Of a stretch of DNA of 64,000 nucleotides, positions 1-64,000 are shown in pieces. The stretch is from the NCBI GenBank assembly GCA_000708835.1, contig DF237060.1, forward strand, positions 129,787 through 193,786. Reading direction: 5' to 3'. The notes below the pieces were generated by a model. It had not been told where the DNA came from, did not search any database, and saw only the letters and a program-made list of their open reading frames with translations. The translations under genes were made by a program, and so were the position numbers. How positions within the stretch are numbered: the stretch's first letter is position 1; each line of letters begins with the position of its first letter. Source of the stretch: Klebsormidium nitens. Its lineage: Eukaryota > Plantae > Klebsormidiophyceae.

Positions 1-1237
1 TTCGGTGGTCTTTTGAGGATGCCACAGAGTCGTTGAAATAGCTGGAAACGCAAGGAAATGGCACTCAAGTAACATTGAAGCAGCTTAGAACCGCACAATG
101 TTGGTTTGTGCAGTGATCTCCAAGACGTCAGTGCTGACACCTGTCACGGATCGGATATCGGCCTTCCGTCATATACTCTTCCGTATTTTCAACCTCGATC
201 CGAGAGCGGACTTCTCTCTCTTCCGCCGTTAGCTGGGGACCTTCGGACCGTCCGTCTCCGGCATGGAACAAGGCTGAGGTTCAATTGCTCGATTCTTGGC
301 AGCCTGAGGCTGCGCCAGCCTGCGCGACGGCCGGTCGGGCGGTTTCGGCGCGAGTCTAGGTCGTCCCAATCGTCGGCGCGCAGAGTTTCTTACATTCGGC
401 GGGGCCGAGTCCGTAGGACTTTGATCGCGCGACCTGGCTTCTGGTTAAATCGAACTCGCGGGACGCCTTGTAACCATCGACGCGCTGACGTACGCGTCTG
501 AAAGGTTTCAGGGTTTTGCAAAGATTCACAAGAATGCTAAAGGATGTGACAGTCCTAGTCAGCATAGCAGTCCTCTCTTGAATGACATTCGGAACGGGAC
601 AGGAGGACGGGCCTTGCTCAAGCGAGCGAACTGTACGTCATCAATGCTGGCACATGCAGCCGTCAAAGCGTCGCATGGGGAACATCGAAACTCTCGAAGT
701 CGGGACAAAAGTGAACGCTGCCCCTAACTAATCAAAGCTTTAAGCTCTTTCTGATCTTCTGAAGCACCTTCACCTCCGAGACCAACACAAGTAGTGGCAG
801 AGGTTGTTAATTGGCTGCGTGACGTCTCTCTGTGTGAAGAGTCCACTGGTGTAGAAATGAGCTCACACCGAACCGCCTTAACTAAGAAACGCATCTCATG
901 CACACAGTAATCTAGAGCCTTGCAACGTGTTGGCTGCAATCGAGGAGGGTTTTGGTATGTCTAAGCTGCTATCTGCAGAATCATTGCCGTATCAGATCTG
1001 CCAAAAAAAATAGTTGCCGTGACAGATTGAGGACGGGTCAGTTCAACTTTCAATAAGCTCCTGAAATAGGCGCAGGCTGTGAGCTCTGAATCACAGCCAT
1101 TTGCTGAGTCCTTTGACGCGACTCCAAGCCGTCTGCTCTGGAGCATTCCTGCAAGCGGTTGGGTTGAGGAGGAAGAAGAATTGGGCCGGGGCGATTTGGG
1201 CAGTGGCGAGCGCCGTGATCGATGCAGCAGCGCATGA

Positions 1238-13200: not shown

Positions 13201-13205
13201 CTTAA
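1238..13205 (+). CDS. Large multi-exon gene: putative nuclear dynamin-like (NUGGC/SLIP-GC-like) P-loop GTPase with Tudor/Agenet-like insert and C-terminal ADD zinc finger
   Basis: Hand-spliced, phase-consistent exons: 1238-1632, 1973-2021, 2471-2713, 3065-3190, 3663-4049 (GC donor), 4506-4748, 5013-5087, 5392(or 5416)-5645, 5957-6236, 6608-6958, 7387-7824, 8613-9599, 10006-10102, 10532-10659, 10909-11059, 11294-11365, 11562-11637, 12032-12181, 12455-12464, 12525-12677, 12942-13205. Sum 4929 nt, ~1,640 aa. Starts MERKKKRKV (SV40-like NLS). G1 KVGSVNGVQGSGKSTM (1992-2018); G3-like VVMIDNPG (4707-4718); ADD Cys pattern at 12534-13127. Possible extra exon in 2022-2470; exons between 11.3 and 12.5 kb are less certain. 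Confidence 0.7.
2591..3172 (+). other. Tudor/Agenet-like domain (split over two exons) inside the GTPase fold of the 1238-13205 gene
   Basis: Spliced translation FPRIESFVVNSYIETFDLGDGKTWEKAVVLEQNDLTTGQYT|IRYLDEENKTNPSDRTQVRLCVDPPKLQNGYLLARP follows the Agenet/Tudor pattern (E..DG..W..A.V....g.Y.I.Y.D....e.v......RP). Recognised by eye, no HMM run. Confidence 0.55.
12534..13127 (+). other. ADD (ATRX-DNMT3-DNMT3L) domain: GATA-like finger plus PHD finger
   Basis: CTVC...LYQHPHFNVPICESC...|KDGIGDFCSWCG...ACNKCSKAYCNGCLMRLFG...EWHCPAC reproduces the ATRX ADD spacing (CTAC...YRHP.L.V.IC..C...DG.DE.C.WC....CD.C..AFC..C..R..G...W.C..C). Confidence 0.85.
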
Positions 13206-14566
13206 GGGTAATGGTCGCAGGTCGGGGCTTTAGCCGCTGCTGCACCGATCGTTTGGATCGTGGGGGAAAATAACGGGAGCTTGCTTGAAGGAACAACAGG
13301 CTAGAGAAAGGAGCTCTTGGCGAAGAGCTTTATCTGAAAGGAAAGGAGCTCGAACTGATATTCTTCAGCAGATGCCAGTAGGGGCGACCGGATAACCTCT
13401 GTTAGGATTGGAGGGCAAGAACGTTTTTGGGGCGAGGGTTTTCAATTAGCTGTTTTTAGGTTATGCTTTTAGAATAAGTGATCACAGAGATACGCTTGTA
13501 GTTGATTTGGTTCAGCTTACGTCTTTTCCTTTAGTCTTGTGTCACGAGCTCTTAGCCCGATTTAAGACAGGCTGGCCGAGCGGGCCCACCAGACGGCATC
13601 TTCGCGGCCGGTCGTTTCGACCGGCCAAGCAATATGGGTAGCCCACTAAAGTTGGTAGCTATAGCAGGCAGATTTGTAGATGTATTTTGAGTCGTTGTGG
13701 GCTGATTGCTGTGAAAGCCCCTAATCAACGAACTCCCGTTTGTGACAGAGCTTTTGGGTCGGCCCTCAGCTTGGTATCCCAAATAGATCTAGTTGCTAGA
13801 GCAGACGTGCAACTGTATATGCTGTAAACTCTGATATCATTGTGGGCTGGTTGCTGTGGAAGGCCCCTGTCCACGAAGCTCCGGTACTTGAATGAGTCTG
13901 ACCTTTCGGGCCAATCGTTTGCGTCAAACCATATGAAAAGTTTTAGGACTCATTGTCAACGACGTTCACTCAGTGACTCGACGAGCACAGAAATTTGCCG
14001 GCGCAGCGGCAAGGTCCTTCTTCGTGTCTTTGCACGCGTGAGTCTTTGTTTGTGTATACGTCGGCGTCTGCACCTAGCTTCGGTGCGGATCCGTTTTGAT
14101 CTCATCATGCTTAAGTACCGGCAGCAAGAGACTTTTTGACGCTCCCGACGGTGAACCGTTATGTGTCGGACAGTACGTGTAGGCTAAAGTTTGCAACATC
14201 TCATTGGATCAATAAAAGCTATAGCTGTATCGCACTGCACCGTCATGATCCTTTACAATCTCCTGCGACATTCATTGGGCCTCCGAGGACATTTGTGAAG
14301 GTGCCGGCTTCATTTGCATATATGCACGAGCGCAGTCGCGCCGGGGCGTGCCATGATGTGTCATGCGTTAGTGGTGCTCGTTCGGTCTTATTTGCAAAGC
14401 GAATTTGGACAGGCAAATTGAATGTAATTCCGCCGGACCTACAGACCGATCGGATCACCGGCATCGATTGAGGTACATCATCTAGCATTCGGGCGGGTGC
14501 ATGTAGGGGCTGAATTCACCATTCTACAAAGCTAGCGCTATGCACAACGGTTGCACCCGCCCACTT

Positions 14567-15450
14567 TCAAAAGATATCAGAGTTGCAACATAGGTTCACG
14601 GCATACGGCACCGTTGTGAACAGCTCTGCAATAAGCTCCAGATCTTTCGTCAGAAAGCGCCACAGCTCTTCGGGGCTAATCCTATGCGCCCGCAAATCCC
14701 GGTCCGTTCCTGCCAAGACCGCCTGCCTTTGTTCCAACCTCTTACGTAGCTTTGTCAGGGGGTTCTTCACCCCCTCCAAATCAAGGAGGGTCTGATGCAC
14801 GGGATGCTCCTGGGATCGTTTTAAAACCCGTTCAGAGCCTCAGATTTTGCTTCAGCCGTTCTGATTGATTGCGCTGGGACAAAGGCGACCTCCGTCCCCG
14901 AGCAGAACTCCGATGGCTTGTCTCCGAATGCAACGCGGAGGGAAAGCTAAAGAACGGAGGCTCTTCTAACTCGGTAAATGCAGCTACCGGAGTAGGGGGC
15001 TTCGAAACACCGGGTGGTGGCGGAGGGGGCTCCGAAGGGCCGGGTTGTGGCACCGTGGGGGCGGGATGGGGAACTAGAGGTGGCAGTCGGAGGTCACTGA
15101 TTGTCCGGAGGGGCCCCGGCCGGGGGGGTGCTCAAGGGGGTCGAGGGGGGCGCTAGGGGCGGGACACGGACCCGAGGAAGGGCGATCCGTGGCCGGAAGC
15201 GGCTAGGGGGGGAGGGGCCGGGACGAACGTGGGGCTGGGCAGGAGGGATGCGAGCATGCGGTCGCGGGGAAATATGGAAAGGCGGCCGCGGCCGCCGATT
15301 CGGCCGACCAGGGGCGGGGGGTGTGTCCGGCGGTCGGGGAGCGGAGGGCCCGGTTCTGCCCCTGCGGGCAAGTCCCCGGGCCGAACTTCCTCAGCTTTGG
15401 ACTCGTCGGCGCCCGCCTTTTGCAGCTGAACTTGGATGAACGTCAGCGCG
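14567..15450 (-). other. Coding-like Pro-rich/helical gene fragment abutting the 3' end of the pseudogene copy
   Basis: GC-rich ORFs 14832-15053 (PQPGPSEPPPPPPGVSKPP...) and 14567-14800 (TLLDLEGVKNPLTKLRKRLEQRQAVLAG...), the latter preceded by a CAG acceptor. No match to the intact paralog; identity unknown. Confidence 0.3.
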
Positions 15451-15451
15451 G

Positions 15452-18400
15452 GGGGCTCGTCGCTGCATCCCTCTCCCTCCGGTAACTCTCCACAAACTGC
15501 CGCTCGTCGTGGGCACGTGCCTCAGCCTGCCCGGTTGCCTCCTTCCGTGCAGTCTGGGCGCCGCATTCCTCCTCTGCTTTTCTGTTCTTGGAGGCGCCGC
15601 TCGAGCGCCCGGGCGGCCGCGAGGCCCTCCTCGGTTGCTCGACGGACTTCCGTCTTGGCCTGGAAACCGGAAAAGGTCGGCGGTAAGAATCTCCATCATT
15701 TGATGCCTCACTTTGCCTTGCGAGTTTCATGAGTCGGATCAAGGCAAGAAAGTAACGTCCAAGGAGACAATCGAGCTTTGCTTGGGCTCTGGAGTCCCCG
15801 TTACGAGCGCTCAGGCGATGGGAACGTTCTTGCACAGCCTCCTGGTCGCGAGCTCCCTACTTTCGTCGTATGGAAAATGACAAGCCCGGCCCTACCAACA
15901 CAACCGTATTTCCGCTAGGCAGCAACCGCCTTTCAAAGAGCCAAGCAAGAAAGCGGACGAAAAGACCTACAAGAGCGCTAGTTGTTCGTAGGAGCTCGCG
16001 GACTGTGACCTGGGCCTGGCGAGAAAAAGAAAAGATAGGACGAAATGAAGAAATAACTCTCCCTTGAGAAACCGTTGGCATTAGAAGGAGAAAAGGTAGC
16101 GTCCAAAGCGCACCTCTTCGTCCGCCTTGACCAGCAGTCCCCGCACGCGCTGCATCTCCCCCTCCAACTCTGCTACTCTGACCGCGCCACCGTTTCCGTT
16201 CCGCTCGCAGTGCTTCCGCCTCCCCCCCCTTCCGTCGGAGTTCCGTCTCGCGGAAGCCCACTAGCGCCTCAAGCTCTGCTAGCTTTCCGGCGGCTCGCAG
16301 CCGCTCTTCCTGAGCGGCCGCTGCCGCCCGAAACAGGGCCTTTTGGTGGTCTACTTCCAGGGCGTGCAGGGCCTTCTGAGCTGACGTCACGTGCTGGTGT
16401 GCCAGGTGGCACTCGGCGGCCTTGCTCTGGAGCTGTTCTTGCAGACTGCGGGAAAGGAGGGCCTGAGGTCGGGAACGCAATGCACCAACTACCGTACAGG
16501 ACATCTGGTTCCTCAAGTCCATTGTAGCTGGTTCATAGGTACGAGGTTCAACCAAACGCACGCACAGATTTAGAGAGGCTGTGGGCTTCTGTTTGTTGGG
16601 ACTGCCTACTTATACTTCTTCTAAGTGACGCACCGTCCGTGACAAGTTCCGACGGCCTCGTGCTCTCGCTCATGTTCCTATCAGCCACCATCTTTTTGCA
16701 TGCTGTATAACAAGACATTCTTTTGTCGCAATCTGATTGAGCCGACGTCCTGGCAGCGATCATCTATGATTCTACCAAAAATAGATACGTTTGAATTCAA
16801 CGGCGATCCTTATCCTCAATTTCACCCTCCTCGGAGCGCTATTATTAGCTTCTGAAAACAAGCCCTACTGTACACTACCCAAGCTACATAATCACACATA
16901 ATAAAGCAAGAGTCCTACTCGCGCTCCTTACCGGCTAACTTCCGCGTCCAGCTCCGCCCCCTCTGCGCGCGCCTTCTTGAGCTTCTGCCCCAGAATCCGC
17001 TGCGCCGCGATCGCGCTCTTCTTCGCCTGCGCCTCCACGCGCAGTGCTGCCTCCAGCCGCTCGCCGGCGGCTTAAAAGCCTAAACCCTCCCCCCGCGCGG
17101 CCGCCAGCTTTGTCTCCAGCCGCATAGGTATACTCTTTCCCTAAGCCACTGGCTTCTTCCAGAGCCGCGAAGTGCGTGCGCGCGCGCCCCCGTCCTCGGC
17201 CGCCGCGTTCTCCAGCAGCGGGGCGCTCTCGAGGACGGAGTGTGAATGGGCGCCCCCGATCACGAGGACCCGGTGACCGTCGAACACGGCCTGAACGCCC
17301 ACCTCTGCGGGAAGGAATCCAGCGAACTGCCACGTGGCAGCACTTTTTCCCGTCTCGTAACTCTCCGGATTCCAACCGATACTCGCGCTTTTCCTCTTGG
17401 TTTGCTCGCGGTTTCCGAGCGGTCCGCCTTTTCCGGACGCCTGTCGTCCTCATACGCGATGGCCCACTGAACTTCGTCGCTCCCGCAACCCCCCCCGGTG
17501 CGCTCAAACTCGCCCGCACTCTTGCCACGCCTTTCGTCGTCCCGCTCTCGTGCCAACATTCAGATCGATCTCTCGCAGCTCTCGCCGCGACGCCTCCAGC
17601 TCCCCGACCAGCGCCACGTGGTCGGCTGCTGACGTCATCGGGGCTCTTTGGAGCCAGATGAAGCCGTCGATGTCGAGCGTGTACACGTCACCAGGTAGTC
17701 GGCTCCGTTGAAGGCCGCCGTAAATGAGCACCTGACGCCCGATGGCAGTGGACACGTGGCCTCGCCTGGTGGCCGGTATGTCCCCAACGGGGTCGACTCT
17801 CCCTCCGCCATACCATGGGTTTCAGATCCTGTAGTACAACAAGAGATTCTAATTGAGATTGGAAAGAGGAAGAGGGATTCAAAACACTTTAATCCCACCA
17901 AGTAAATGCAGACGTCTCTGACGACGATCGCACTAAAGCTCCCTCATGAAGCTGGGTAAGGAAGATACCAGCAGAGCACCTCCACTTCACCAAGCTGCTC
18001 TTGCACCGGCGTCCAGGAGCTTGCTTCCACTCCCGTGATTCACTTCAAGAAGACCCCCAATAACGCTGACAGCGCACAGAACAGTGAGTCCTCTCGCAAA
18101 GTGCCAGCTTGCATCGGTTCCGCAACTTACTAGGACACGAAAACAATTTCGCACTGACCAGCACATACAGGTCGCTCAGATGCGCCTGCCCGTCGTAAGT
18201 CCCGTGCACCAACACCAGGTCCCAAAGGCTTCAGGATTTCGAGCGTTAGCAACTCATGAATATAGCGCTTAGGGTATTATCTCAACTTACCAGCGCATAG
18301 AGGTCACCCAGATGCGTCTGCCCGTTGTACCCCCCGTGCGGATCACTAGGTCTCCGAGCGCCTCCATCACGTGGACCCTCCGTGCCCGGGGGGGATCCCC

Positions 18401-52536: not shown

Positions 52537-54461
52537 TGTTTGCGTCGTGTGAGATTTCGTCGGAAGGGTTAGAGAACAGCTAGTGTCCGGCAGCTGGCAT
52601 ACTAGTAGCGACTATGTGCAGCATGCTGCCGCGCAGAGACTTCCTGCAATGAGCGCACAGATTTGTACCTCCAATCAACGGCCGAGACGTTGGCGTTTCG
52701 ATGGGAAGAGGCGGGAGGATGGATGCGAGAGGCGCTCGCGAACTTGAGTGGGAAATGGTATGGAGGCAGGACGACTCCTAGCTTTCAGGGAAGGTAACAG
52801 GTACGCGGCTACAGTATTCCAGTCCTTTCGAGTGTGTTGATCGAGTGAGTGGCTCAAGGGTATGTCAGGCAACGGACTTGAAGCTTCTTGCGCTGCTGGC
52901 GGACTACAGATCAGAGTATTATTGTCTATGGACTTTGCCCTTGAAGTCCGCGCGACTCAAAGGCGATCTTAGTCGTCCCTTTTTGCTGCGCGAATGCTGC
53001 AGAAGGCTTACATGCTCCAAGGATTTCTCGTGAAGTCAATTTGAAAATGAAACCACTCTGGCGCTTTGGGCATGCAGCAGGCGTCCTGTGATAGAATGCC
53101 AGACAGTTCTATGTCACTGTGATAGAGCGCCTCTCGATTGAGTCCCCACGAGTGGCGATTAACCCAGTTGACATATCAAAGCTGGGCTGCTTTTCAGCGG
53201 TCCCGCATGCACTGTTTGAGGCAGAGCTGCGACAGGCATCGCTCTCATGCCTCGAAGTGTTCAAGCACAAGCAAACTCTGCTGATTCGTTTGTGCCAACA
53301 GTGCAAACATATGGTCACTAAATGGATGGCCGGTATCCAATCTCGAAAGTAAGCCATCACCAAATTTTACGTCGCTTCTTGCAGGAACACAACGAGAACC
53401 GAGCGTGATGATGGCATCCCCTTGCTTGTACATTGATCTGCGGTCAAGGAACTCTTAAAAACAAGCAGTTTTTGTCTTGAGGCGCTTCTCAACACGAATG
53501 TAATACTGTCGTTGCCAAAACGGTGCCTTCTAAAGCATGTATGTCCGGTCAATCAGCACACTCAGAAGCTCGGTTACTAGGCTGTGGCAGAAGTAAACAG
53601 CCAAGTGCGGATACACGATGTCTGCCTGCTTTTGTTTGCCATGCGAAGTCTTGTTTACATCTTTTAGTATCACATGGGTGCACCTCGGTGGAGACAATCC
53701 GCCCTCGGAAGATAGGGTGCATGGTTCATATATTTTGGTCGTAGTTCCATCATCATTGCTTCGCTCATAAAACCTACATGATATGAATACTTTGATCACA
53801 TTGAGAGGCATGAAAAATACGTATGTTGATGCGATTGAAAACTTAATTCCATGCAGCAAGGTTTTGTCAGACTGGATGGTGTCATGCCGTATTTATGTCC
53901 GGTTGAGTTACTAGTTACTGTTAAGTCACTGTGTAACTAGAGTGAGGACATAAATGCAGAAATTTAATATTGCAGGAGGTTGCACCTAGTCTAGGGACAG
54001 GACATGACCACTAGGGAAAGAATGAAGCTTCATGCTTCATTCTTTCTTCTGTTCATTCAGAGGCTTTGCAAGGGTGTTCTACGGTGGTCCCTGAGAGCTT
54101 TGCAATGGCCTGAAGGAAGTCTCATGCAACGGTGTAATGGCGGCATAATGTGAGTCATGTGCTTTGGTCACACTCATGGTCCTTCTGTGAAGCGTGGACG
54201 TGGCGCAGGATATTCACAGAAGAAAGAATCAAGGGACATGTTGGGTGTAGGCCGGAGGTGGGGATCAGAGACTGCGTAGCGTTACGCAAGGTTGCTCTAG
54301 TGAAGAGCTGTTTTAGTGCGGCGGCCTGTGAGGCAGCCTGGGGAGCAGCCTGTGAGGCTGGGGCGCAGGGGTAGACTGCGTGTTTAGGGCAGGGGTGGCA
54401 GTGTTCCACCGTTGTCAGATCGGGGCAAGGGCACTGGGCCTTAGTCGCTGAGGTGCACCAG

Positions 54462-54960
54462 GAAGGCAGGGCGCTCGGTCTTGATCTAAGGCTAGGGGCG
54501 CTCTCGCTGATAGGTATTAGGGGGGGCTGCGTGCGTTGTAAAGCCTCCGGGCTAAATCCTGGCGGCGGGAGACCGTGCCTGCCGGGGCCCAGCACTGAGC
54601 TCGATTATTCGAGAAGTGTTGGTCGCCACGTAAGCCTTGTGGAGTTCCCCCTTTGCTTTGGCCTGGTAGCATAGCTGTTGGCAACGGTAGTGCGAGCAGT
54701 GCTCTGTAGCCAGCGAGTCGCAGTAGGAGGCAGGCCACTCGGCCTTATCTAAGGCTAGGGGTGGTCTCGCTGATCGGTATTTTGTGGGGGGCTGCACACG
54801 CGTAAAGGGTTTCGGCCCATCGCTCAGCGGCGGGAGACCGTGCCTGCTGGGCACCAGTGCTGAGCTTGATTATTCAAGAAGCACTGGTTGCGTGTGTTAA
54901 GCCTTACGGAGTTCCCCCGTTGCCGTGACCTAGAAGCACAGCTTGCGGTGACAGTAGTGC
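54462..54960. repeat. Two diverged tandem copies of a ~265-bp unit
   Basis: Anchors ctaaggctagggg (54486/54749), gcggcgggagaccgtgcctgc (54562/54827), ggagttcccc (54641/54908). Confidence 0.85.
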
Positions 54961-55506
54961 ATGGATCGTGAGGACTTTAGGGCTTTCAGCGTGTTTCTGC
55001 AGAGGTGGGAGGCGTTCGCAGCTGAGTGGGTTGGTTTGCCTCGGGAGAAGCTGTGGGTGAACTTCCTGGCAAACAACCAGGAGGCAGCTGAGCAGTTTGG
55101 GTTTGAAGTAAACCCTGCTGACCATTGGCCGCTGTCACAGAGTGGGTGCCTCACGGATTGCGTCATCTGTGACGCCTCGGAGGAAGACGAGGCGTTCGCA
55201 GAGTTTGAAGTCGCAGACCGGGTGGACACAGCGCGAGTGGGGAACGCAGGGCAGAGGCAAGAGTTTCCCTGTCACTGGTGCCGGACAGAGCGCGCGCGGG
55301 AGAGTCGGGAGCAGAGCCTGGCGGAAGAAAGCGGGGCACAGCTGAGATCACCGTTCACGGGAGGGGCCATTGGAGACCTAGACTGAAGCTGGCGGGCGAG
55401 AGTGTGGGCACGCAGCTTCTGGACCTGCCCCACACAAGTACGACCAAAAACAACAGTTGCAAAGAGTAGGGATTCAATCATTGAACCCTTTCCGAACATT
55501 TCGCAG

Positions 55507-55656
55507 GTTGCCGATGCGCGCATTGTCCGAGACCCAAGGACCCAGGAGTCGCGCGGCTTCGGCTTCATCACCATGGCCACGCGTGAAGACGCTGACGCTG
55601 TTGTCAGGAGGGTCAACGGCAAAGCCTTTGAGGGACGGCTGCTCACTGTTGAGAAG
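55507..55656 (+). pseudogene. Isolated exon encoding the C-terminal half of a Tra2/SR45a-type RRM
   Basis: cgcag|VADARIVRDPRTQESRGFGFITMATREDADAVVRRVNGKAFEGRLLTVEK|gtacgc; RNP1 RGFGFI; phase 0-0. I could not find the RNP2 exon upstream or an RS tail downstream in the window. Confidence 0.7.
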
Positions 55657-56580
55657 GTACGCTGGTCAAAATCGTCATGCTTGCAATGGAGTGATTCGCC
55701 ATCCATTCATTTCCTTTCATGGCATTTTTTTCCATTCCCTATGGCTCTCTGCCCCTATGATTTTGGTGCTCTTTGATCTTTGCTGGAGATTAACGCGCTT
55801 CTCCGGCCATTTGAGAAGCATCTCTGGTACAATTGAGAATCAAATGTGTGGAGCTGCAAGCCTTGAAGCCTGTGATCTAAAAAATGGCTCGGAAATAGAA
55901 CCGTGGGAAGAGTTCTCGGTTGCCTTATAGCAGTCTGTTCGCGTAAGCAGAGCTCGTTTGAAGTCGGAACGTCCCAACTTTGTAGAGTGCATCCTGCGCC
56001 ATCTGCGAAGATGACAGTGTTGGCTTTATGTCATGCTGACGCAGACGAGAGGGCCATTGTGATTCAAGCCACCCAGCCTTCGAAGATCCACATGAATATG
56101 AAGCATTTGACTTCAAACCGAGAATTTCAGTATTGACTTTACTTTTCATAAGCAGTTGGTCGCGTCCTCGTTGTTATCCGCATCTTTCGCAGTCCGCTTT
56201 CTGCTTTGCGTTCTGCCTCTGTCTGACTTCGTCGCCTCCCCCCCGATTGCTATCTGAGTTTCGTCAAGGATCTACTTGGATCCTGCAGTTTCCAAGCTCA
56301 AAATGGCCCCTTTTACAAGCCTCCCCCAAGGGAGCGGCCCCCCCTCGTCCCATCCCCTCTGCGCCATCGTTTTCACTGCTAGAGGCGATTGCAGAGAAGG
56401 CGTCGGTGGGTGCACAGCATCGTTGGGTGGCGCTGTGGCACGTGTGCAGGCGACTTAGGTGGTTGGTTCTCATCGGAGAGGATCCGCCGGAGGACGTGGT
56501 GAGCGAGGAACGGGAGGCCTGGGTTCGGTGGCCTGGTTGCAGGGTGAGCGCGGTAGGGTTTAGGAAGAGGGGCTCCGCCT

Positions 56581-59500
56581 ATGCCAGTGGAGACTAGGTC
56601 CCAGCTAGCGGCGCGTTATCGGGAAGTGTTGGAAGCAGTCTCGCAGAGTACGGAAGGGGCGAACGGGGAGAGTGAGGGCTCAGGCGGGGAGGAGCAAGGC
56701 GCGGAAGCGGCGCAGGCAAGCCAGGGGGGCTGGTGGGAGGAGGAAGAGGCGGAGATGGCGTCGGGTGCGGGCCTGGAGGGGCGTCAGAGGTTTTCTGGCA
56801 AAAGGGGTGAGGGACTCACCTTGAAGCAGTTTGAGGTGATGGTCAAGGGAAGCCTGCAGGATCGTTTCAAAAAGCTGCAGAAGGACGTGGGAAACCCGGT
56901 GGAAGGGGTCGAGTTCAACGGGAGATATTGCATCTATCTCGGGGAGTTTCTCGACAACCCCGCGAAGCTGGCGCACGAGCGGGAGTATGAGGAGCATTGC
57001 AAAGAGCTGGACCCGGTGGGGGCGCTGTTGACTTCGCTCAAGCGCCACTTCGAGGATCGTAAGGAGGGCAAGGTGCAGGAATGGGTGCAGTTCCGGCGTG
57101 AGCCCGGGGAGGAGCTCCCGTCGCTGCTGTTTAGGCTGAAGGGTTTGGCGGAGGACTTGGACAAGCAAGACGCAGACCAGGAGCTTGTCACCAAGTTCGT
57201 GACCAGCTTGGACAGGCGGTTTGCTGAGCAGGCCAGCTCGCAGGCGATGGCTGCGACCAAGGAGCCGGGGGGTGCTTATACGCTAGACGAGGCGTACGAA
57301 GCGGCGCTGAGGGTCCAGTCCATCAACTCTCGGCTGCGAATCGCGCGCGAGCTTGCTCCGAAGGCGGTGGAAGCGACCAGGGCGCAGTGGGGGCGGAAGC
57401 CGGCGGTGGCAGCGCACGCAGCGGTGGTACCTGCGGCACCGCAGCTGGGAGCAGCAGCACCGGCGGCAGAGGGAGGATCGGGGGCATGTCACAACTGCGG
57501 TGAGGTGGGACACTACCGCAACGGGTGTCCGCACCCGCGGCGTAACAGCTCGGGGAGGGGCCAAGCAGCAGGAGGGAGGGGAGGCGGCGGCCGCGGCCCC
57601 CGTGCTTGTTTTGTGTGCGGGGAAACCACTCATCTCGCTGCGCAGTGTGCTAAGCGGGCGGCGCCGGCTGTGGCAGCAACGGCACCTAGCGCAGGGGGAG
57701 GCATCGACGCAGAGGAGTTCAAGGCCTTCCAGGAGTGGCGGGCCATGTCTCAGGCGGCGCTGGCGGTACGGGCGGAGATCGAGGAGGAGGATGATGACTG
57801 CGGGTGGGATGAGCTAGAGTACGGGCTGGGGGCCGTGGCGCTTCCCTTGCCCCAACGGAGCGGGCCCGCAGTGGCGATGGCGGCAGCAGGCACGCGGGCC
57901 GGCGCGGAGAAGGCAAGAGCAACGAGAGCGGCGCGGGGTAAGCCGGCAACGGGGGGGGGTGTCTTGTCTCCACCGCAGCGTGCAGGGAAGGCCACGGTGG
58001 AGGCTGTGGGGACGGTTCAAATTGCTCAGCCGGTGGACCTCGCTGCGGTGGAGTCGCTCAAAGCGCGCAGGGACAAGGCGGCCGCCAAGGAGCGGCTCGC
58101 CAGGCTGCCAGACCACGGCCGCCACGTGGCGCCACAAGGCCTCAACCGTCTGCCCAAGGGGTTTGCGGTCCAGGGGGGTGCAGCGCCGGGAAGAGCAGCG
58201 GAGGGGCTGGGCAGAGTGGCCGGCGCGGCAGGATTCTCTGCGGCAAAAGGAAGCTCGGAGGCGGAAGTAGTGCAACAGGCTGGGACCACGAGCGGGGGGT
58301 GGACAGGGCCCGTTCAGGAGCCGGGGCCAGCACTCAAGGGGGTGGTGACGGTGGAGCTGGGCGCCCTCCTTGCCTTGGCAGAACGGGCAGGGCTTGACTT
58401 GGCCGCAGTCATTGAGATGACAGCGCCAGGTGGGGCACGCTCGGTCCCGCGAATCGGAGGGACAAGTGGGGCTGCGGGGGTTGCGGTCGCTGTGCTGTCC
58501 CCCATTGCAGAAAAAGCACGTCGCGCACGGAAAGCAAGCCTGGCGGAGCGCAGTGAGGGGCTAGCAGGGCAGGCCCCACAGACCGTGAGCTGGGCGCAGG
58601 TCGTGGGAGAGAAGGGTAGGCAGCGGGCCAGCCTCCCGAAGGATCAGCCAGAGAGCTCGCGCATGGCGGAAGAGAGGGCGAGAGGAGGCCGTGTGGCGGC
58701 AGACGCGCAGGTGGCGCGCGAGCTGGCAAGAGCAGAGGAAGAAGGAGCGCGGAGGGCAAGGGAGGAGCAGGCGGTTGCCACCAGTCGTGATGCGGAGCTT
58801 GCTATGGAGCTGGTTGCGCGAGAGGCGCAGGAGCGGGGGGTGGACCGGGAGGAGGTGCTGGCGGCACAAGAAATGGGCCCGGGTCCAGTGGTGCAGGAGA
58901 GAGCGACGGCGGAGGCCCCGGTGCTGGGAAAGGGGAAGCAGCGGGAGGGATCCCCCGCTGGTCTGAAAGAGGACCTGGAGCGTGGGTTGGCGTGGGAGCG
59001 GAAGCTGGGATCGGGACAGTGGCGGGGAGCTGAGCAGGTGGCTGATGTAACTCTTCAGGCAACTGAGGAGACGGGCGCCAAGCAGCTGGTGGACGCTGCC
59101 TACGCCCACACCAAGGCAATGGCCTGTTTCGCAGAGGGGCAGCCCATGGTCAGTCCGGAGCAGAGGGGGACAGTCGAGAAGAGTCCCGACTGGGTGGATA
59201 ATGCGCAGCGGGCGGTTCAGGTGGTGACCCCGCGCGGGTTGGTGGCGCCACACAGGGTCCTCATAGACGGCGGCAACTTTTACTCCATGGCGGGAGCAAA
59301 GCTAAAGGCGCAACTGGGGCTGCGCCAAAAGGACATGGACGCGGTGGGGCATCGCGTCCACACTGCAACCGGGAGGATTGAGGCGCTGCAGGGGGGGCTA
59401 ACCAAGAGGCCGGTGCCGATTGTCCTTAATGCGGGGACGCCGGAGGAGCTAACCCTCTACGAGAGGCTCGCCATCACCGACTCCACCGGGTATGACCTGC

Positions 59501-59706
59501 TCGTGGGCACGAGGGCTGCCTACCCTCCTGGCCTGTCGGTGGACAGGTGGCAGGAGAAGGCAGTGTACAGGGCTGATTGGGAGGGGGCAGGGCAGAAGCT
59601 GGGTGTTCTGCCCATGCGTCTGCACCGGACCCGCGCGGCGTCCACAGCAAGAGCAGGCCAGCGCAGCCAGGCAAGTGCAGCGCTGGCGTGCTGCCTCACA
59701 AGGTGA
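56581..59706 (+). CDS. gag: ORF1: Gag (capsid, two CCHC zinc knuckles) fused to retropepsin-like protease, 1041 aa
   Basis: Retrotrans_gag-like QFRREPGEELPSLLFRL; CHNCGEVGHYRNGC (57487-57528); CFVCGETTHLAAQC (57607-57648); protease-like VLIDGGNFYSM (D at 59266) and YDLLVGT near the C-terminus. Confidence 0.9.
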   Translation: MPVETRSQLAARYREVLEAVSQSTEGANGESEGSGGEEQGAEAAQASQGGWWEEEEAEMASGAGLEGRQRFSGKRGEGLTLKQFEVMVKGSLQDRFKKLQKDVGNPVEGVEFNGRYCIYLGEFLDNPAKLAHEREYEEHCKELDPVGALLTSLKRHFEDRKEGKVQEWVQFRREPGEELPSLLFRLKGLAEDLDKQDADQELVTKFVTSLDRRFAEQASSQAMAATKEPGGAYTLDEAYEAALRVQSINSRLRIARELAPKAVEATRAQWGRKPAVAAHAAVVPAAPQLGAAAPAAEGGSGACHNCGEVGHYRNGCPHPRRNSSGRGQAAGGRGGGGRGPRACFVCGETTHLAAQCAKRAAPAVAATAPSAGGGIDAEEFKAFQEWRAMSQAALAVRAEIEEEDDDCGWDELEYGLGAVALPLPQRSGPAVAMAAAGTRAGAEKARATRAARGKPATGGGVLSPPQRAGKATVEAVGTVQIAQPVDLAAVESLKARRDKAAAKERLARLPDHGRHVAPQGLNRLPKGFAVQGGAAPGRAAEGLGRVAGAAGFSAAKGSSEAEVVQQAGTTSGGWTGPVQEPGPALKGVVTVELGALLALAERAGLDLAAVIEMTAPGGARSVPRIGGTSGAAGVAVAVLSPIAEKARRARKASLAERSEGLAGQAPQTVSWAQVVGEKGRQRASLPKDQPESSRMAEERARGGRVAADAQVARELARAEEEGARRAREEQAVATSRDAELAMELVAREAQERGVDREEVLAAQEMGPGPVVQERATAEAPVLGKGKQREGSPAGLKEDLERGLAWERKLGSGQWRGAEQVADVTLQATEETGAKQLVDAAYAHTKAMACFAEGQPMVSPEQRGTVEKSPDWVDNAQRAVQVVTPRGLVAPHRVLIDGGNFYSMAGAKLKAQLGLRQKDMDAVGHRVHTATGRIEALQGGLTKRPVPIVLNAGTPEELTLYERLAITDSTGYDLLVGTRAAYPPGLSVDRWQEKAVYRADWEGAGQKLGVLPMRLHRTRAASTARAGQRSQASAALACCLTR

Positions 59707-59740
59707 CAGGCCCCGGGGGACCTGGGGCCGGGGGTGACGG

Positions 59741-62700
59741 ATGGTCACCCAAAGGGGGGTTCCAGGGGCCCCCAGAACAGGGGTGGGGGGCAAGGAGGGT
59801 CGCAGTGAGAGGGTAGAGCGTTGGGAGAGACGGCGGTGGCCAAGAGGGCCAGGAGTCGACGTGGTGCAGGAGGCACGTCACGCAGTGCGCGCAGCGGTGC
59901 AGCAACCAATGGGGAAGGTCGGCCTACCGCAGCGGGTGCGCATCCCACAGCTGGAGGGATGTGCACCGTTGGATTGGCGAGTGGTGGGACCACTACCAAC
60001 AGACCGGCCGCTAAGGGTCGTTGAGTTGTTTGCGGGGGTTGGAGCCGTCACGCAGGCGGTGGTCAGGCTTGGTTACTCTGTTGGGGAGGTCATTGCGTGT
60101 GAACGCAGGGGGGCGGCAAGGGTCGTGCACAGGCACCAGGTGCTGCAGCTGGCCAAGGAGTTCCCCGCTCGGATCTCAGCGCGAGCCTCGGCGCAAATGC
60201 ATCATCACCTGCCCCAGGACATCCAGCTTGTCACGGAAACCCATCTGCGAGAGCTGGAGCCAGTAGACTTGGTGGTGGCAGGGTGGCCGTGCCAGGGTAA
60301 CAGCGCCGCGGGTACGGGGCAGGGGCTTGACGACGGTCGCTCAGGATTGTTGACAGAGTTGCTGCGGGTGTTGGCGTGCATGCAACGCCTGCACAAGGGC
60401 TGGGGGCAGCCTCTTGGGTATATAGTGGAGCACGTAGCCGCTGGGTTTGACAAGCGGCCAAAGGTGCGGGAACACTACGAGGCGGCGCGCGGGTTGCTGG
60501 GGCCAGAACTCGTAGTAGACGCCGCCCAGGTCGGGTCGCGAGCGCACCGTCTGCGTGCCTGGTGGACAAACCTCGAGGGGCCTGCGTTGCTGCGCGCAGC
60601 GCTGGCACAACAGGTTCGTCACCCTGGACTGTTTGTGCACCAGGTCTTGGGGCCTGGGAGGAAGGCCAAGCCGCCGTCAGGACAGGGGACGGCGCCATGG
60701 GCAAAAGTGGAGAAGGTGGGGGAACCGCGTCGTGCCCTAAACACTTTCGTCAGCTACCCCGGATCATACGCGTTCTCCCGCGGGGGCGGGGCCGTTATCC
60801 GGTGTGAGGCTCCCACCGGTGCCGTCAGCTTTGGGGAGCCAACGGCCGACGAGAGAGAACTAGCCATGGGTTTTCCTCGTGGATTCACCGCCGCGCCTGG
60901 GACGTCGGAGGGCGTGCGCAGAGAGCTCCTAGGCCAGGCAATGGATCTCAATACCCTGCTGTGGCTGCTAGCAGCTTGCAAGGAAGGAGCCGCGCTGCGT
61001 TTGAACCGGCTGGGAGGGGGTAGAGGCACGGGGCAGCAGGTCCCCAAACTGCGCGCTGGCGGCGGAGCGGGAGGTGGCGCTGGCGGCGGAGTTGAAGCTG
61101 GCGCTGGCGGGAGCGCTGGAGCGGTCGGTGGAGCTGCGGTGGCGCGCGCTGGCGGCAGAGCTAGCGCCGGAGGGAGCGCCGGAGCTGGAGGGGCGCGCGC
61201 TGGAGGTGGCGGTGGCCCTGGCGGCGGAGCTGCAGGTGCTGGCACCAGAGCTGGAGTGGCGCCTGCTGCCGGCGTTGGAGCTGGCGCTGGAGCCTCGCGC
61301 TCTGGTGCCGGCAGGGTGTGTGCCGCTGCGGGGGGGGCGCAGCCAGGAGCGGCAGGGCCGGGAGTGGGCGCGAAGACAGGGGTGTGCAGTGGAAGCGCAG
61401 CTCCCTCAGTGAACGGAGGGGCAGGAGTGCTGGAGGCAGGGGTTGGAGAAGCAGGGGCTGAGCCGCCACGAGGGAGTAAGATGAAGCAAGGCTGGGTCGT
61501 GGGGTCGCAACTGAAAGATGAGGAAAAAGAGTATGCCGCGGGGGTGGTGGAGAAGAATCGCGATGTGTTCGCGTTCAGTCTGGAGGAGATTGGGCAGTTC
61601 AAGCTGTTTGAAGTCCAGTTGGATTTAAAAACGGATCAACCAATCTTTGAGCGTCGGCGGAAGCACAGCGCGCGGGAGTGGGAGTTGGTTGACGAGAGGT
61701 GCCGGGAGTTGGAGACAGCGGGCATAATCGAGGAGTGCGACTCAGACTTCGCGGGTAATTCGGTGGTGGCGGCCAAGAAGGATCCGGACGGGAACTGGAA
61801 GTTGGCACGGTTTTGCACAGACCTGCGGAGGGTGAACGAGCAGACGGCGCAGGACCGCTACCCAATGCCGTTGCCAGAGGAGGTGTTGGAGGGGCTGGGC
61901 CACGCCAAGTTCTACTCCACCATCGACATACGCGGGGCGTTTCACCAGCTGGTGGTGAGGAAGGAAGATCGCAGGAAGCTGGCGTTCTGGTCCAGCAGTA
62001 AGCTTTACTGCTGGAAGCGGTGCCCTTTTGGAGCGCGCAACGCCAGCGCCTGGTTCCAGCGCGCGATAGACCGGACGCTCAGGGGGTTCGAGGGGTTTGC
62101 GCGCAACTTCATCGACGACCTGCTGATAGAGGGAGGGGAGACACTGGAGGAGCACATGGAGCTGGTTCAGCGCGTGTTCGATCGGCTGCGCGAGGTGGGG
62201 CTCAAGTGTCACCCGGAGAAGTGTTGCTTCGGGGCAGACTCGGTGGAGTACTTGGGGATGTGGCTGCACCCGGGGGTGGTGTCGCCACAGGTGGCAAAGG
62301 TGGCTGCCATCGCCTCCTTGCCACGGCCAACTGATGTGACGTCGGTGAAGGCATTCTCAGGGGTGGTGAACTACTACCGCCAGTTCATCCCCGACTGCAG
62401 CCGCCTGCAAGCCCCGTTGAACGCCCTAACCAAGAAGGGGGCCCCTTGGTGTTGGGGGGAGGAGCAGGAGCAGGCGTTTGTGGCCCTGAAGGGGGCACTG
62501 CAGGGGGGCCAGGTGTTGGTGTTGCCGCGGAGGGGGCGGCCGTTTAAGGTGCGCTGCGACTTGAGCAAGAAGGGCGTGGGCGGGGTCCTGTTGCAGCAAG
62601 ATGAGGAGGGGGTCGAGCGGGTGGTGGCATACGGAAGCCGCAGCTGCAACCAAGCAGAGTCGCGTTACAGCAGCTTCGAGGGAGAGCTGCTAGCTGCGGT

Positions 62701-64000
62701 CTACTTTGTGCGGCTCTGGCGCCAGTACCTGTATGGGGAGAGGTTTCAGCTGGAGAGCGACCACCAGCCGTTGCAGTGGATCCTCACCAACTCCAAGCTT
62801 ACTGGGAAGCTGGCGCGGTGGGCGCTCATGCTAAGTGAGTTCGATTTTGAAGTCAAGCACAAGCCGGGGGTTGACAACGAAATGGACTGTCTCAGCAGGT
62901 TCCCCCGGCAGAGCACGGTGGACAGTGCGGGGGTGCGCCAGGAAGCCGACCTGGAGGCAGCAGGCATGCTGGCATGGTCAGCTGCGGCGTGCTTGTCCTG
63001 GCAGCCAGGAGAGCAGCAGGTCGGGGAGGCGGCGCGGAGGCCAGGCACGGAGGTGCAGGCACCGGTGGATGTCTGGGAGGACTCGGGGCTCCTGGCGCTG
63101 TTGCAAGGGAGGGGCCCAGCGGTCGGAGGCAGCCCCCAAGAGCGTGACCGGCGGCGTCACAGGGCTCAGGGCTACGAGTGGCGGGGGGATCATCTGGTCA
63201 GGCGGCTGGTGAGTGGGGAGGCACGCGTGGTGCCCAGGCCTGAGGCGCGGGCGCGGCTAGTCCGAGATGTCCACGAGCGCGCGGGGCACCTGGGGGTGCG
63301 CAAGACCCTGTCTCTTCTGCGGCCGCACTACTGGTGGGTGGGGCTGGCGACGGAGGTGGAGCGTGCGGTGCGCGGGTGTGAGGCGTGTGATCGTGTGCGC
63401 GCCACGTTCAACGCCAAGCACCCCGCGCTTCAGCCCCTCCCCATTAAGGGGTTGTTCTACCGGTGGGGGCTTGATTTTGCAGGGCCTCTCCCCAAGACAG
63501 CCAAGGGCAGCCAGTATGTGCTGGTGCTCGTCGAGCATTTCAGCAAGACTGTGGTGCTGGCGCCCACGGGTGACAAGGAGCCGGCCCCGGTGGCAGAGGA
63601 CTTCACGCGGGAGGTGTTGACGCGCTACGGAGCGTGTGCAGAGGTGGTCACAGACAGGGGGGGGGAGTTTGGCGCTGAATTCCAAGCTTGTCTGGATGCG
63701 GCGCTGATTGATCACCGCTCCACTTCCGCTCATCACCCGCAGGCGAACGGGCTCAGTGAGCGGATTGTTCAGGTGGTGAAGCGAGCGCTGCGTAAATGGT
63801 GCCTCGGTCACCCAGCGGATGAGTGGAACCTGTACCTGCCATGGGTGTCCATGGGGTACAATTTCAGCATGCAGCGATCCCTGGCAGGCTTCTCCCCCTA
63901 CCAGCTGCTGCATGGACGGGAGCCTGTGGTGCCTGGAGCCATCAAGGTGCGGGTGGAGGAGCCCCTCAATTTGGATGACGAGGCGCGGTTTGTGACAGTT
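59741..64000 (+). CDS. pol: ORF2 (frame +2, open to window end): C5-DNA methyltransferase - Gly/Ala linker - RT - RNase H - integrase
   Basis: My translation from ATG 59741 has no stop to 64000. RT: FCTDLRRVN, RCPFGARNA, FIDD (62108-62119), YLG. RNase H: VRCDLSKKGVGGVL, YSSFEGELLAAV, SDHQPLQW. Integrase: HERAGHLG...CEAC, WGLDFAGPL, VVTDRGGEF, HPQANGLSER. Confidence 0.95.
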   Translation, partial: MVTQRGVPGAPRTGVGGKEGRSERVERWERRRWPRGPGVDVVQEARHAVRAAVQQPMGKVGLPQRVRIPQLEGCAPLDWRVVGPLPTDRPLRVVELFAGVGAVTQAVVRLGYSVGEVIACERRGAARVVHRHQVLQLAKEFPARISARASAQMHHHLPQDIQLVTETHLRELEPVDLVVAGWPCQGNSAAGTGQGLDDGRSGLLTELLRVLACMQRLHKGWGQPLGYIVEHVAAGFDKRPKVREHYEAARGLLGPELVVDAAQVGSRAHRLRAWWTNLEGPALLRAALAQQVRHPGLFVHQVLGPGRKAKPPSGQGTAPWAKVEKVGEPRRALNTFVSYPGSYAFSRGGGAVIRCEAPTGAVSFGEPTADERELAMGFPRGFTAAPGTSEGVRRELLGQAMDLNTLLWLLAACKEGAALRLNRLGGGRGTGQQVPKLRAGGGAGGGAGGGVEAGAGGSAGAVGGAAVARAGGRASAGGSAGAGGARAGGGGGPGGGAAGAGTRAGVAPAAGVGAGAGASRSGAGRVCAAAGGAQPGAAGPGVGAKTGVCSGSAAPSVNGGAGVLEAGVGEAGAEPPRGSKMKQGWVVGSQLKDEEKEYAAGVVEKNRDVFAFSLEEIGQFKLFEVQLDLKTDQPIFERRRKHSAREWELVDERCRELETAGIIEECDSDFAGNSVVAAKKDPDGNWKLARFCTDLRRVNEQTAQDRYPMPLPEEVLEGLGHAKFYSTIDIRGAFHQLVVRKEDRRKLAFWSSSKLYCWKRCPFGARNASAWFQRAIDRTLRGFEGFARNFIDDLLIEGGETLEEHMELVQRVFDRLREVGLKCHPEKCCFGADSVEYLGMWLHPGVVSPQVAKVAAIASLPRPTDVTSVKAFSGVVNYYRQFIPDCSRLQAPLNALTKKGAPWCWGEEQEQAFVALKGALQGGQVLVLPRRGRPFKVRCDLSKKGVGGVLLQQDEEGVERVVAYGSRSCNQAESRYSSFEGELLAAVYFVRLWRQYLYGERFQLESDHQPLQWILTNSKLTGKLARWALMLSEFDFEVKHKPGVDNEMDCLSRFPRQSTVDSAGVRQEADLEAAGMLAWSAAACLSWQPGEQQVGEAARRPGTEVQAPVDVWEDSGLLALLQGRGPAVGGSPQERDRRRHRAQGYEWRGDHLVRRLVSGEARVVPRPEARARLVRDVHERAGHLGVRKTLSLLRPHYWWVGLATEVERAVRGCEACDRVRATFNAKHPALQPLPIKGLFYRWGLDFAGPLPKTAKGSQYVLVLVEHFSKTVVLAPTGDKEPAPVAEDFTREVLTRYGACAEVVTDRGGEFGAEFQACLDAALIDHRSTSAHHPQANGLSERIVQVVKRALRKWCLGHPADEWNLYLPWVSMGYNFSMQRSLAGFSPYQLLHGREPVVPGAIKVRVEEPLNLDDEARFVTV
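60011..60970 (+). other. DNMT3-like C5 cytosine methyltransferase domain within ORF2
   Basis: Motif I LRVVELFAGVG (F at 60029); II IACE; IV VDLVVAGWPCQGNS (PC at 60287-60292); VI YIVEHV (60428); VIII SRAHRLRAWWTNL; IX ERELAMGFPRGFT; X RRELLGQAMDLNTL. The order and VIII-X wording parallel animal DNMT3 (AHRARYFWGNL, EMERVFGFP, RLLGRSW). Confidence 0.93.

Follow-up and report, generated by a model that had tools for sequence, protein, structure and literature searches.

A DNMT3-like methyltransferase in the Pol of a gypsy-order retrotransposon at a scaffold end of Klebsormidium nitens

Introduction

Retrotransposons that bear the type of silencing enzyme used by their hosts represent a rare inversion of the arms race. 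Does the end of scaffold DF237060.1 of Klebsormidium nitens carry such an element, and if so, is it intact, young and capable of activity? The sequence analyzed here (the window) comprises 64,000 nucleotides of this scaffold (assembly GCA_000708835.1, positions 129,787 to 193,786 of the forward strand), and the locus lies at scaffold positions 174747-193786, at its very end. All coordinates below are those of the window unless another contig is named, and all features lie on the plus strand. A preliminary description of the window, made from the sequence alone, had proposed an intact retrotransposon that encodes its own DNA methyltransferase (DNMT) of the DNMT3 type fused to reverse transcriptase (RT), and had considered this copy young and possibly active.

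Elements of this class have already been described in the same organism. KnitGypsy-Dnmt3 elements of K. nitens contain intronless, non-rearranged Dnmt3-type domains inside the Pol open reading frame (ORF) of a Gypsy element (de Mendoza et al. 2018, Nat Commun 9:1341, PMC5890265). Their copies show Ka/Ks values below 0.2, are silent and are methylated at CHG and CHH sites, and CG methylation in K. nitens marks gene bodies that are active and not transposons that are silent (PMC5890265). When element-borne domains were assayed in yeast, SymbioDIRS-Dnmt3 alone produced de novo CG methylation (PMC5890265). In addition, a 2025 survey noted streptophytes and dinoflagellates as groups in which certain DNMT3s form part of retrotransposons. 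The preliminary description was right that the class is known; indeed, because KnitGypsy-Dnmt3 was published from the same genome in 2018, the finding itself is already known, and the locus adds no discovery. Its value lies in the details.

Taken as a whole, the locus is very probably best explained as a KnitGypsy-Dnmt3 copy that is probably recent, has been rearranged by a fragment of host DNA and is seemingly silent. In the following, we present the evidence on Pol and its methyltransferase, on the age and expression of the copy, and on its remaining parts and relatives, and then weigh the alternatives.

A DNMT3-type methyltransferase in a gypsy-order Pol

The frame between 59738 and 64000 contains 1421 codons without a stop and runs off the end of the window. 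Its first ATG is at 59741, and the pol ORF counted from there (59741..64000) has 1420 codons, lies in the +1 frame relative to gag and is cut by the scaffold end. Pfam recognizes five domains in the pol frame: DNA_methylase (PF00145, E 2e-8, aa 93-212); RVT_1 (E 1.3e-23, aa 682-842), which marks the RT at 61781..62263; RT_RNaseH (E 1e-32, aa 906-1035; RT_RNaseH_2 E 6.5e-28), which marks RNase H at 62453..62842; Integrase_H2C2 (E 5.3e-15, aa 1168-1222); and rve (E 1.1e-7, aa 1242-1334). The last two belong to the integrase (63239..64000), which consists of an H2C2 zinc domain (63239-63403) and a DDE core (63461-63739) and whose C-terminal part is cut; a candidate D, D, E triad can be read by eye in the core. 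These matches, together with the methyltransferase motifs I to X described below, bear out the earlier proposal of a C5 methyltransferase in frame upstream of RT, RNase H and integrase in an uninterrupted stretch of more than 4.2 kb. The gag, protease, RT, RNase H and integrase parts follow each other in the order typical of gypsy elements, as judged by Pfam and, for the protease, by alignment.

The methyltransferase domain spans 59915..61015 and contains its motifs in canonical order: motif I, ELFAGVG (60023-60049); motif IV, AGWPCQG (60278-60304); motif VI, YIVEHV (60419-60436); motif VIII, AHRLRAWWTNL (60536-60574); a motif IX-like segment, ERELAMGFP (60851-60889); and motif X, LLGQAMDLN (60926-60952). 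The catalytic Cys (in PCQ), the Glu of motif VI, the RxR of motif VIII and the S-adenosylmethionine-binding motif I are all present. A Gly/Ala-rich linker of low complexity (61016..61537) separates this domain from RT. It contains G+C-rich short repeats at 61055-61290, evolves with a dN/dS of 0.3-0.4 and is predicted with low confidence (predicted local distance difference test, pLDDT, below 50 from domain residue 368 onward).

Three approaches placed the domain close to DNMT3. A phmmer search of the PDB matched DNMT3A/B/C with E-values of approximately 1e-12, followed by tobacco DRM (9e-5) and HhaI (6e-3). A profile built from 17 element DNMT domains matched DNMT3A/B/C at approximately 1e-23, DRM at 6e-11, DNMT2 at 5e-10 and HhaI at 1e-7; DNMT1 was not among the matches listed. 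Finally, an AlphaFold2 model of the domain (mean pLDDT 85.3, predicted template modelling score 0.86) superposed on DNMT3A/B across the whole catalytic fold, and the best 50 Foldseek matches listed were all DNMT3A/B/C catalytic domains (E approximately 1e-17, TM score by target approximately 0.77). By sequence, profile and predicted fold, the methyltransferase is therefore nearest to DNMT3A/B/C, in agreement with the preliminary description. The PWWP and ADD reader domains had no Pfam match in pol. Protist and algal DNMT3s are likewise reported to lack companion domains (PMC12344493), and PWWP and ADD are thus not defining for the DNMT3 family as a whole.

Comparisons were made with the K. nitens copies on DF237852 (L001), DF237746.1 (L006) and DF237790 (L007), the window copy being L003, and with a JGI relative (L002). 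The DNMT domain is under purifying selection: its dN/dS relative to L001, L002, L006 and L007 is 0.11-0.17, compared with 0.12-0.17 for integrase, 0.13-0.24 for gag and 0.06 for RT plus RNase H, all of these values being approximate, since dS is saturated (>1.5). RT is approximately 80% identical at the amino acid level to that of other K. nitens copies, as is the RT-RNase H-integrase region in its entirety. In relatives, Pol extends approximately 170-200 aa further and ends in a PHD finger, as seen in L007 and L002.

In a maximum likelihood tree of 40 element DNMT domains, the window sequence fell into a clade of 16 rows with 100/100 support, its nearest relative being K. nitens KFL_009030040 (78% identity); identity to the closest proteins in the DNMT domain was 61-78%. 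The stem branch leading to the Klebsormidium clade is long (1.31 changes per site). This tree consists of element-borne domains, which were the only relatives returned by word-based searches, and has no host DNMT3 outgroup; placement relative to host DNMT3s rests on the published tree (PMC5890265). The identifiers kfl00111, kfl00903 and kfl00841 do not occur in the accessible portion of the supplementary text of that paper (PMC5890265). The element is almost certainly a copy of KnitGypsy-Dnmt3, a retrotransposon of Ty3/gypsy order with a DNMT3-type methyltransferase in Pol between protease and RT.

Host-gene insert, age and expression

A stretch of 946 bp (55430..56375) between gag and an upstream reading frame, ORF0, is found in the window copy only. 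It is absent from L006, in which the corresponding positions 10469 and 10477 nearly adjoin. Within frame 55387-55773, the insert codes for an RRM that lacks its N-terminal third (RRM_1, E 4.6e-11); it comprises an exon at approximately 55505-55657, followed by downstream sequence. In a comparison of run contigs with 55001-61000, those of the RNA-type runs X6, X10 and X18 matched no part other than 55505-56379, from which they differ by 3 substitutions and 2 indels; they continue into unrelated sequence at 55505, 55657 and 56379. These contigs therefore derive from an expressed host gene and do not represent the element. Contigs of the DNA run X1 span the two junctions and agree with the window at every base, which establishes that the insert is real. 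The insert is derived from a host RRM gene and is approximately 99.5% identical to its source, an identity that also makes it recent. We considered the RRM as a part of the element and rejected this, since it is private to this copy and belongs to the expressed host gene.

Two further observations concern the source gene and its annotation. RNA contigs of the source RRM gene include both spliced forms ending at 55657 and forms that read on to 56379; the gene is alternatively spliced or intron-retaining at this point. The public gene model KFL_001110320 joins ORF0, the RRM exon, a short conserved segment and gag via three introns, and no spliced contig supporting these introns was found among the RNA-type contigs. 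The combination of RRM and CCHC in databases is probably an annotation artefact.

The gag and pol frames together comprise 2470 codons (7.4 kb) without a stop. Approximately 3.5% of possible substitutions in gag and pol create a stop codon, and the probability that the sequence is still free of stops falls from 0.28 at a neutral divergence of 0.5% to 0.08 at 1% and to 0.006 at 2%. The stop-free 7.4 kb and the near-identical host insert support a recent insertion, and the window copy is probably one. The earlier view of the copy as young was, then, a fair inference, given a chance of approximately 8% of remaining stop-free at 1% divergence. CpG richness, which had been offered as a further sign of youth, is rejected as such: it reflects a G+C content of 65%, and the CpG observed/expected ratio is 0.80 (0.79-0.83) in the element versus 0.87 on the host side.

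Approximately 15 RNA-type runs hold approximately 7% of the words of a 10-kb stretch, which equals the size of the host fragment. Judged by the runs examined, the window copy appears not to be transcribed. The DNA run covers the element at a depth of 5-10, which gives no hint of numerous identical copies. The proposal that the copy could be active thus found no support, as RNA contigs cover the host-like fragment only and the family copies are silent and CHG/CHH-methylated (PMC5890265).

Gag, protease and the gag-pol junction

The element consists, in order, of a 5' repeat region, ORF0, gag with two CCHC knuckles, protease, and a separate pol with DNMT, Gly/Ala linker, RT, RNase H and integrase. 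The gag frame (56557-59706) contains 1049 stop-free codons, and the gag-protease ORF proper (56581..59706) encodes 1041 aa from its ATG. This ORF is 100% identical to the K. nitens protein KFL_001110320 (P0023); an exact look-up of the 1041-aa sequence gave no match, the annotated model, which starts upstream, being found by similarity. Identity to the gag of other K. nitens copies is 50-55%. The nucleocapsid part (57487..57648; Pfam zf-CCHC, E 1.2e-5) carries two CCHC zinc knuckles, CHNCGEVGHYRNGC and CFVCGETTHLAAQC, both intact.

A retropepsin-like protease (59257..59508) forms the end of the gag ORF. The protease of the window copy had no Pfam match and was identified via alignment to the relatives P0006 and P0007, whose corresponding stretch matches Asp_protease_2. 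Its active site reads VLIDGG (59257-59274), with DGG in place of D[ST]G, and is followed by YDLLVG. DGG occurs in every Klebsormidium-type copy aligned that has an intact motif (P0036 has DGN), and DTG or DSG occurs in distant relatives.

The gag stop codon (59704-59706) is followed by the stop of the pol frame (59735-59737) and the pol ATG (59741), and the two ORFs do not overlap. The end of gag before its stop, AALACCLT, is common to several sister copies, which indicates that the two-ORF layout is a family trait and not a private defect. A G+C-rich hairpin (GGCCCC ... GGGGCC) lies in 59707-59740, right after the gag stop and before the pol-frame stop and ATG. Candidate routes to Pol are reinitiation, or readthrough plus a frame shift.

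The 5' region and the assembly

The element starts near 54010, a boundary uncertain by some tens of bases, at which homology to L006 begins. The 5' terminal (repeat) region (54010..54960) matches L006 in 54010-54656 (L006 8958-9588, 69%) and in 54725-54929 (L006 9391-9594, 92%), and contains two tandem units of approximately 265 nt each (54464-54693 and 54728-54960). Its first part, 54016-54207, is 71% identical to L002 8351-8523, a repeat block downstream of pol, as expected of a terminal direct repeat. A perfect 13-nt palindrome at approximately 54016-54049 (GAAAGAATGAAGC / GCTTCATTCTTTC) forms the first conserved bases of the 5' end and is also kept in L006, in L007 and in the 3' repeat block of L002. 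L002 and a Marchantia copy (L004, see below) both display split direct repeats, and of the window copy the assembly contains the 5' side only; the terminal repeats of KnitGypsy-Dnmt3 were described as DIRS-like in the legend of Fig. 4c of the original report (PMC5890265).

ORF0 (54961..55386) encodes 141 aa (MDREDF...) and is conserved upstream of gag in sister copies. It is 62% identical over all 141 aa to L006 10001-10423, upstream of the L006 gag; in L007, where it is weakly duplicated, two stretches that precede gag match it at 43% and 38%. ORF0 had no Pfam match, and its best Atlas score, 0.84, was below the useful range. Downstream of the insert, 56376-56798 is 78% identical to L006 10477-10899; the portion preceding the gag ATG (56376..56580) is a conserved segment that is coding-like in another frame and corresponds to exon 2 of the gene model of the sister copy.

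Window position 64000 is the final base of DF237060.1, and pol is thus cut by the assembly and not by the window. Because the scaffold ends there, terminal repeats cannot be used for dating. We scanned the window and L007 for direct and inverted repeats and found no second terminal repeat, as both contigs end before it. All four K. nitens copies fetched (L001, L003, L006 and L007) lie at scaffold ends, implying that the 2014 assembly breaks systematically inside these elements of 65-70% G+C. This assembly therefore probably gives too low an estimate of the copy number and completeness of KnitGypsy-Dnmt3. The depth of only 5-10 in the DNA run does not support high copy number as the reason for the breaks; we infer that poor coverage of DNA with 65-70% G+C is the likelier cause.

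Relatives in liverworts

DNMT-gypsy-PHD relatives were found in the liverworts Marchantia polymorpha, Riccia sorocarpa and Calypogeia fissa, with DNMT domains approximately 40% identical to that of the window. Bryophyte matches to the element DNMT profile included P0077 of C. fissa, P0092 of R. sorocarpa and, weakly, P0022 of Sphagnum fallax (approximately 33-43% identity to the window). The DNMT-gypsy lineage seems to be widespread in liverworts and possibly occurs in a moss. In M. polymorpha, copy L004 (chromosome 4, AP019869.1, 10223128-10246964) contains an element at 6845-17657 of the extracted sequence. One of its ORFs (9749-13834) encodes gag, protease and DNMT and holds Mp_4g09160; a single in-frame stop separates it from a second (13838-16972), which encodes RT, RNase H, integrase and a PHD finger. 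Its repeats 6845-7122 and 17268-17545 share 99% identity, and the segment 17134-17246 is the same as 17545-17657, an arrangement of split direct repeats.

No description of liverwort DNMT-gypsy-PHD elements was found in the literature searched. These relatives suggest that the capture of DNMT3 was not specific to Klebsormidium.

A metagenomic contig, L005 (ENA ERZ25067493, ctg159469_5x_c, 1-18357), contains 2.2 head-to-tail copies with a period of 8261-8262 nt and 100% identity. Each is a single ORF of 2358 aa with protease, DNMT, RT, RNase H, integrase and PHD finger. The contig either represents a tandem array or was assembled from a circular form.

Weighing the interpretation

What might a DNMT3-type enzyme do in Pol? 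Pol may carry the methyltransferase into the particle or pre-integration complex along with RT and integrase. There it could methylate the new cDNA or the freshly integrated copy at CG sites, and the C-terminal PHD finger seen in relatives could help choose chromatin. This scheme of self-methylation by a Pol-borne DNMT, with its presumed activity, substrate and benefit, is tentative, and we consider it rather more doubtful than credible at present. De novo CG methylation, which the preliminary description had cited for such elements, was shown for SymbioDIRS-Dnmt3 only; the KnitGypsy-Dnmt3 domain gave none in yeast, an outcome judged inconclusive by its authors.

Several observations weigh against our interpretation. 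The scaffold ends inside the integrase, leaving the 3' end of pol, any PHD finger and the 3' repeat beyond the assembly, and with them any view of terminal repeats, target-site duplication and completeness; in addition, the internal region is interrupted relative to the sister copy L006 by the 946-bp insert. On both counts, the description of the element as intact is not supported. The gag and pol ORFs are non-overlapping, with 29 nt from the gag stop to the stop preceding the pol frame, which makes the route of Pol translation unclear. A search for a primer-binding site with one plant tRNA-iMet pattern gave 5 matches versus 4.75 expected, i.e., the chance level; one of them (54664-54675, 2 mismatches) has no counterpart in the second tandem unit. 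No RNA contig of runs X6, X10 and X18 covers gag, pol or the DNMT domain, contigs being able to show presence and not absence. Motif VI reads EHV instead of ENV, an Asn-to-His change beside the catalytic Glu, and in mouse Dnmt3a the N167A substitution slows methylation 10-fold (PMC4802922). Finally, the KnitGypsy-Dnmt3 domain produced no methylation in yeast, a result that its authors call inconclusive because human DNMT3B failed in the same assay (PMC5890265).

A first alternative is that the copy is an immobile relic or a non-autonomous variant, whose ORFs are open merely by recency and whose transposition is blocked by the host fragment, by silencing or by a defective 3' part. We give this possibility slightly less than an even chance. 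The insert in a region that is uninterrupted in L006 is in its favor, as are the absence of RNA contigs on gag and pol in the three RNA-type runs (with the approximately 7% of words held by some 15 runs), the CHG/CHH methylation of silent copies (PMC5890265), the low DNA depth and the lack of a near-identical sister in protein searches, in which the best match in the DNMT domain was 78%. Against it, all 2470 gag and pol codons are free of stops, the catalytic Cys, Glu and Arg of the DNMT and both CCHC knuckles are intact, and the integrase D, D, E residues, read by eye, are apparently kept. Moreover, contigs cannot reveal the absence of rare transcripts, and the insert may sit in a dispensable leader.

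A second alternative, and the main rival to the self-methylation scheme, is that the DNMT3-like domain has been retained for a role different from the usual C5 methylation of DNA: for instance, binding of DNA or chromatin, methylation of RNA or of RNA:DNA hybrids, or a much slower or more specific reaction. Among proteins P0001-P0106, EHV is present in every Klebsormidium-type sequence retrieved that shows motif VI (63-78% identity to the window), except for one EYV variant (P0091), and ENV is present in every liverwort-type or more distant relative. The long stem branch of the Klebsormidium clade, the slow N167A mutant of Dnmt3a (PMC4802922) and the negative yeast assay (PMC5890265) point in the same direction, and the Klebsormidium-wide replacement of Asn by His might explain the latter. 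However, purifying selection maintains the Cys of PCQ, the Glu, the RxR and motif I, which binds SAM; the predicted structure can be superposed on DNMT3A/B along the entire catalytic fold; and the failure of human DNMT3B in the yeast assay makes its negative outcome inconclusive (PMC5890265). On balance, we regard a changed function as unlikely.

That the locus is not a transposon at all, and is instead a host gene (a domesticated Pol-DNMT fusion) or an assembly chimera, is largely refuted and barely credible: its annotation as ordinary genes (KFL_001110320 and the following 1420-aa model) and its position at a scaffold end, where misjoins are common, are outweighed by the joint presence of gag, protease, RT, RNase H and integrase in gypsy order, by a 5' region and ORF0 common to other dispersed copies that also lie at scaffold ends, by DNA contigs that match with zero differences and bridge the junctions, and by the lack of visible expression.

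The preferred reading is accordingly a KnitGypsy-Dnmt3 copy, probably recent and seemingly silent. A bolder version of it, which we find improbable, would hold that the copy is very recent, still mobilisable and tagged by the 946-bp fragment, that its EHV-type DNMT3 methylates its own cDNA or insertion, and that the DNMT-gypsy-PHD arrangement shared with liverworts reflects a capture older than the K. nitens lineage or horizontal movement. If this were true, the 946-bp tag would allow new insertions of the lineage to be traced and self-methylation to be tested in a streptophyte. The open gag and pol with a unique tag of host DNA are also a possible template for expression tests.

Comparison with known systems

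The closest known system is KnitGypsy-Dnmt3 itself, which shares with the window copy the host genome (NIES-2285), the architecture, purifying selection and the grouping of the DNMT with K. nitens element DNMTs. There is no categorical difference between them. The window copy represents a diverged sublineage (61-78% identity in the DNMT, 50-55% in gag) and is distinguished by its private host-gene insert of 946 bp and by its truncation in the assembly.

SymbioDIRS-Dnmt3 and SymbioLINE-Dnmt of Symbiodinium are likewise retrotransposons that encode a C5 DNMT, with cDNA self-methylation as the proposed role (PMC5890265). They differ in belonging to the DIRS (tyrosine recombinase) and LINE classes and represent independent capture.

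The catalytic domains of mammalian DNMT3A, DNMT3B and DNMT3C (e.g., PDB 2qrv, 6u8p and 8tci) have the same motif order, including the motif VIII signature AHR.R..W.NL. Identity to them is 22-24%, and the window sequence has PCQ for PCN and EHV for ENV. It also contains approximately 100 extra residues, which extend its N-terminus and lengthen the segment between motifs VIII and IX, lacks PWWP and ADD and is embedded in a retrotransposon polyprotein.

The liverwort elements have the same order of gag, protease, DNMT, RT, RNase H and integrase, with a C-terminal PHD finger as in L007 and L002. Their motif VI is still ENV and their protease motif D[ST]G, in place of the EHV and DGG of the Klebsormidium clade. 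The first ORF of the Marchantia element combines the DNMT with gag and protease, and RT follows after an in-frame stop, whereas the DNMT of the window copy is part of the pol ORF. Chromoviruses, which are Ty3/gypsy elements with a chromodomain at the integrase C-terminus, likewise carry a chromatin reader in this position; the relatives described here have a PHD finger instead.

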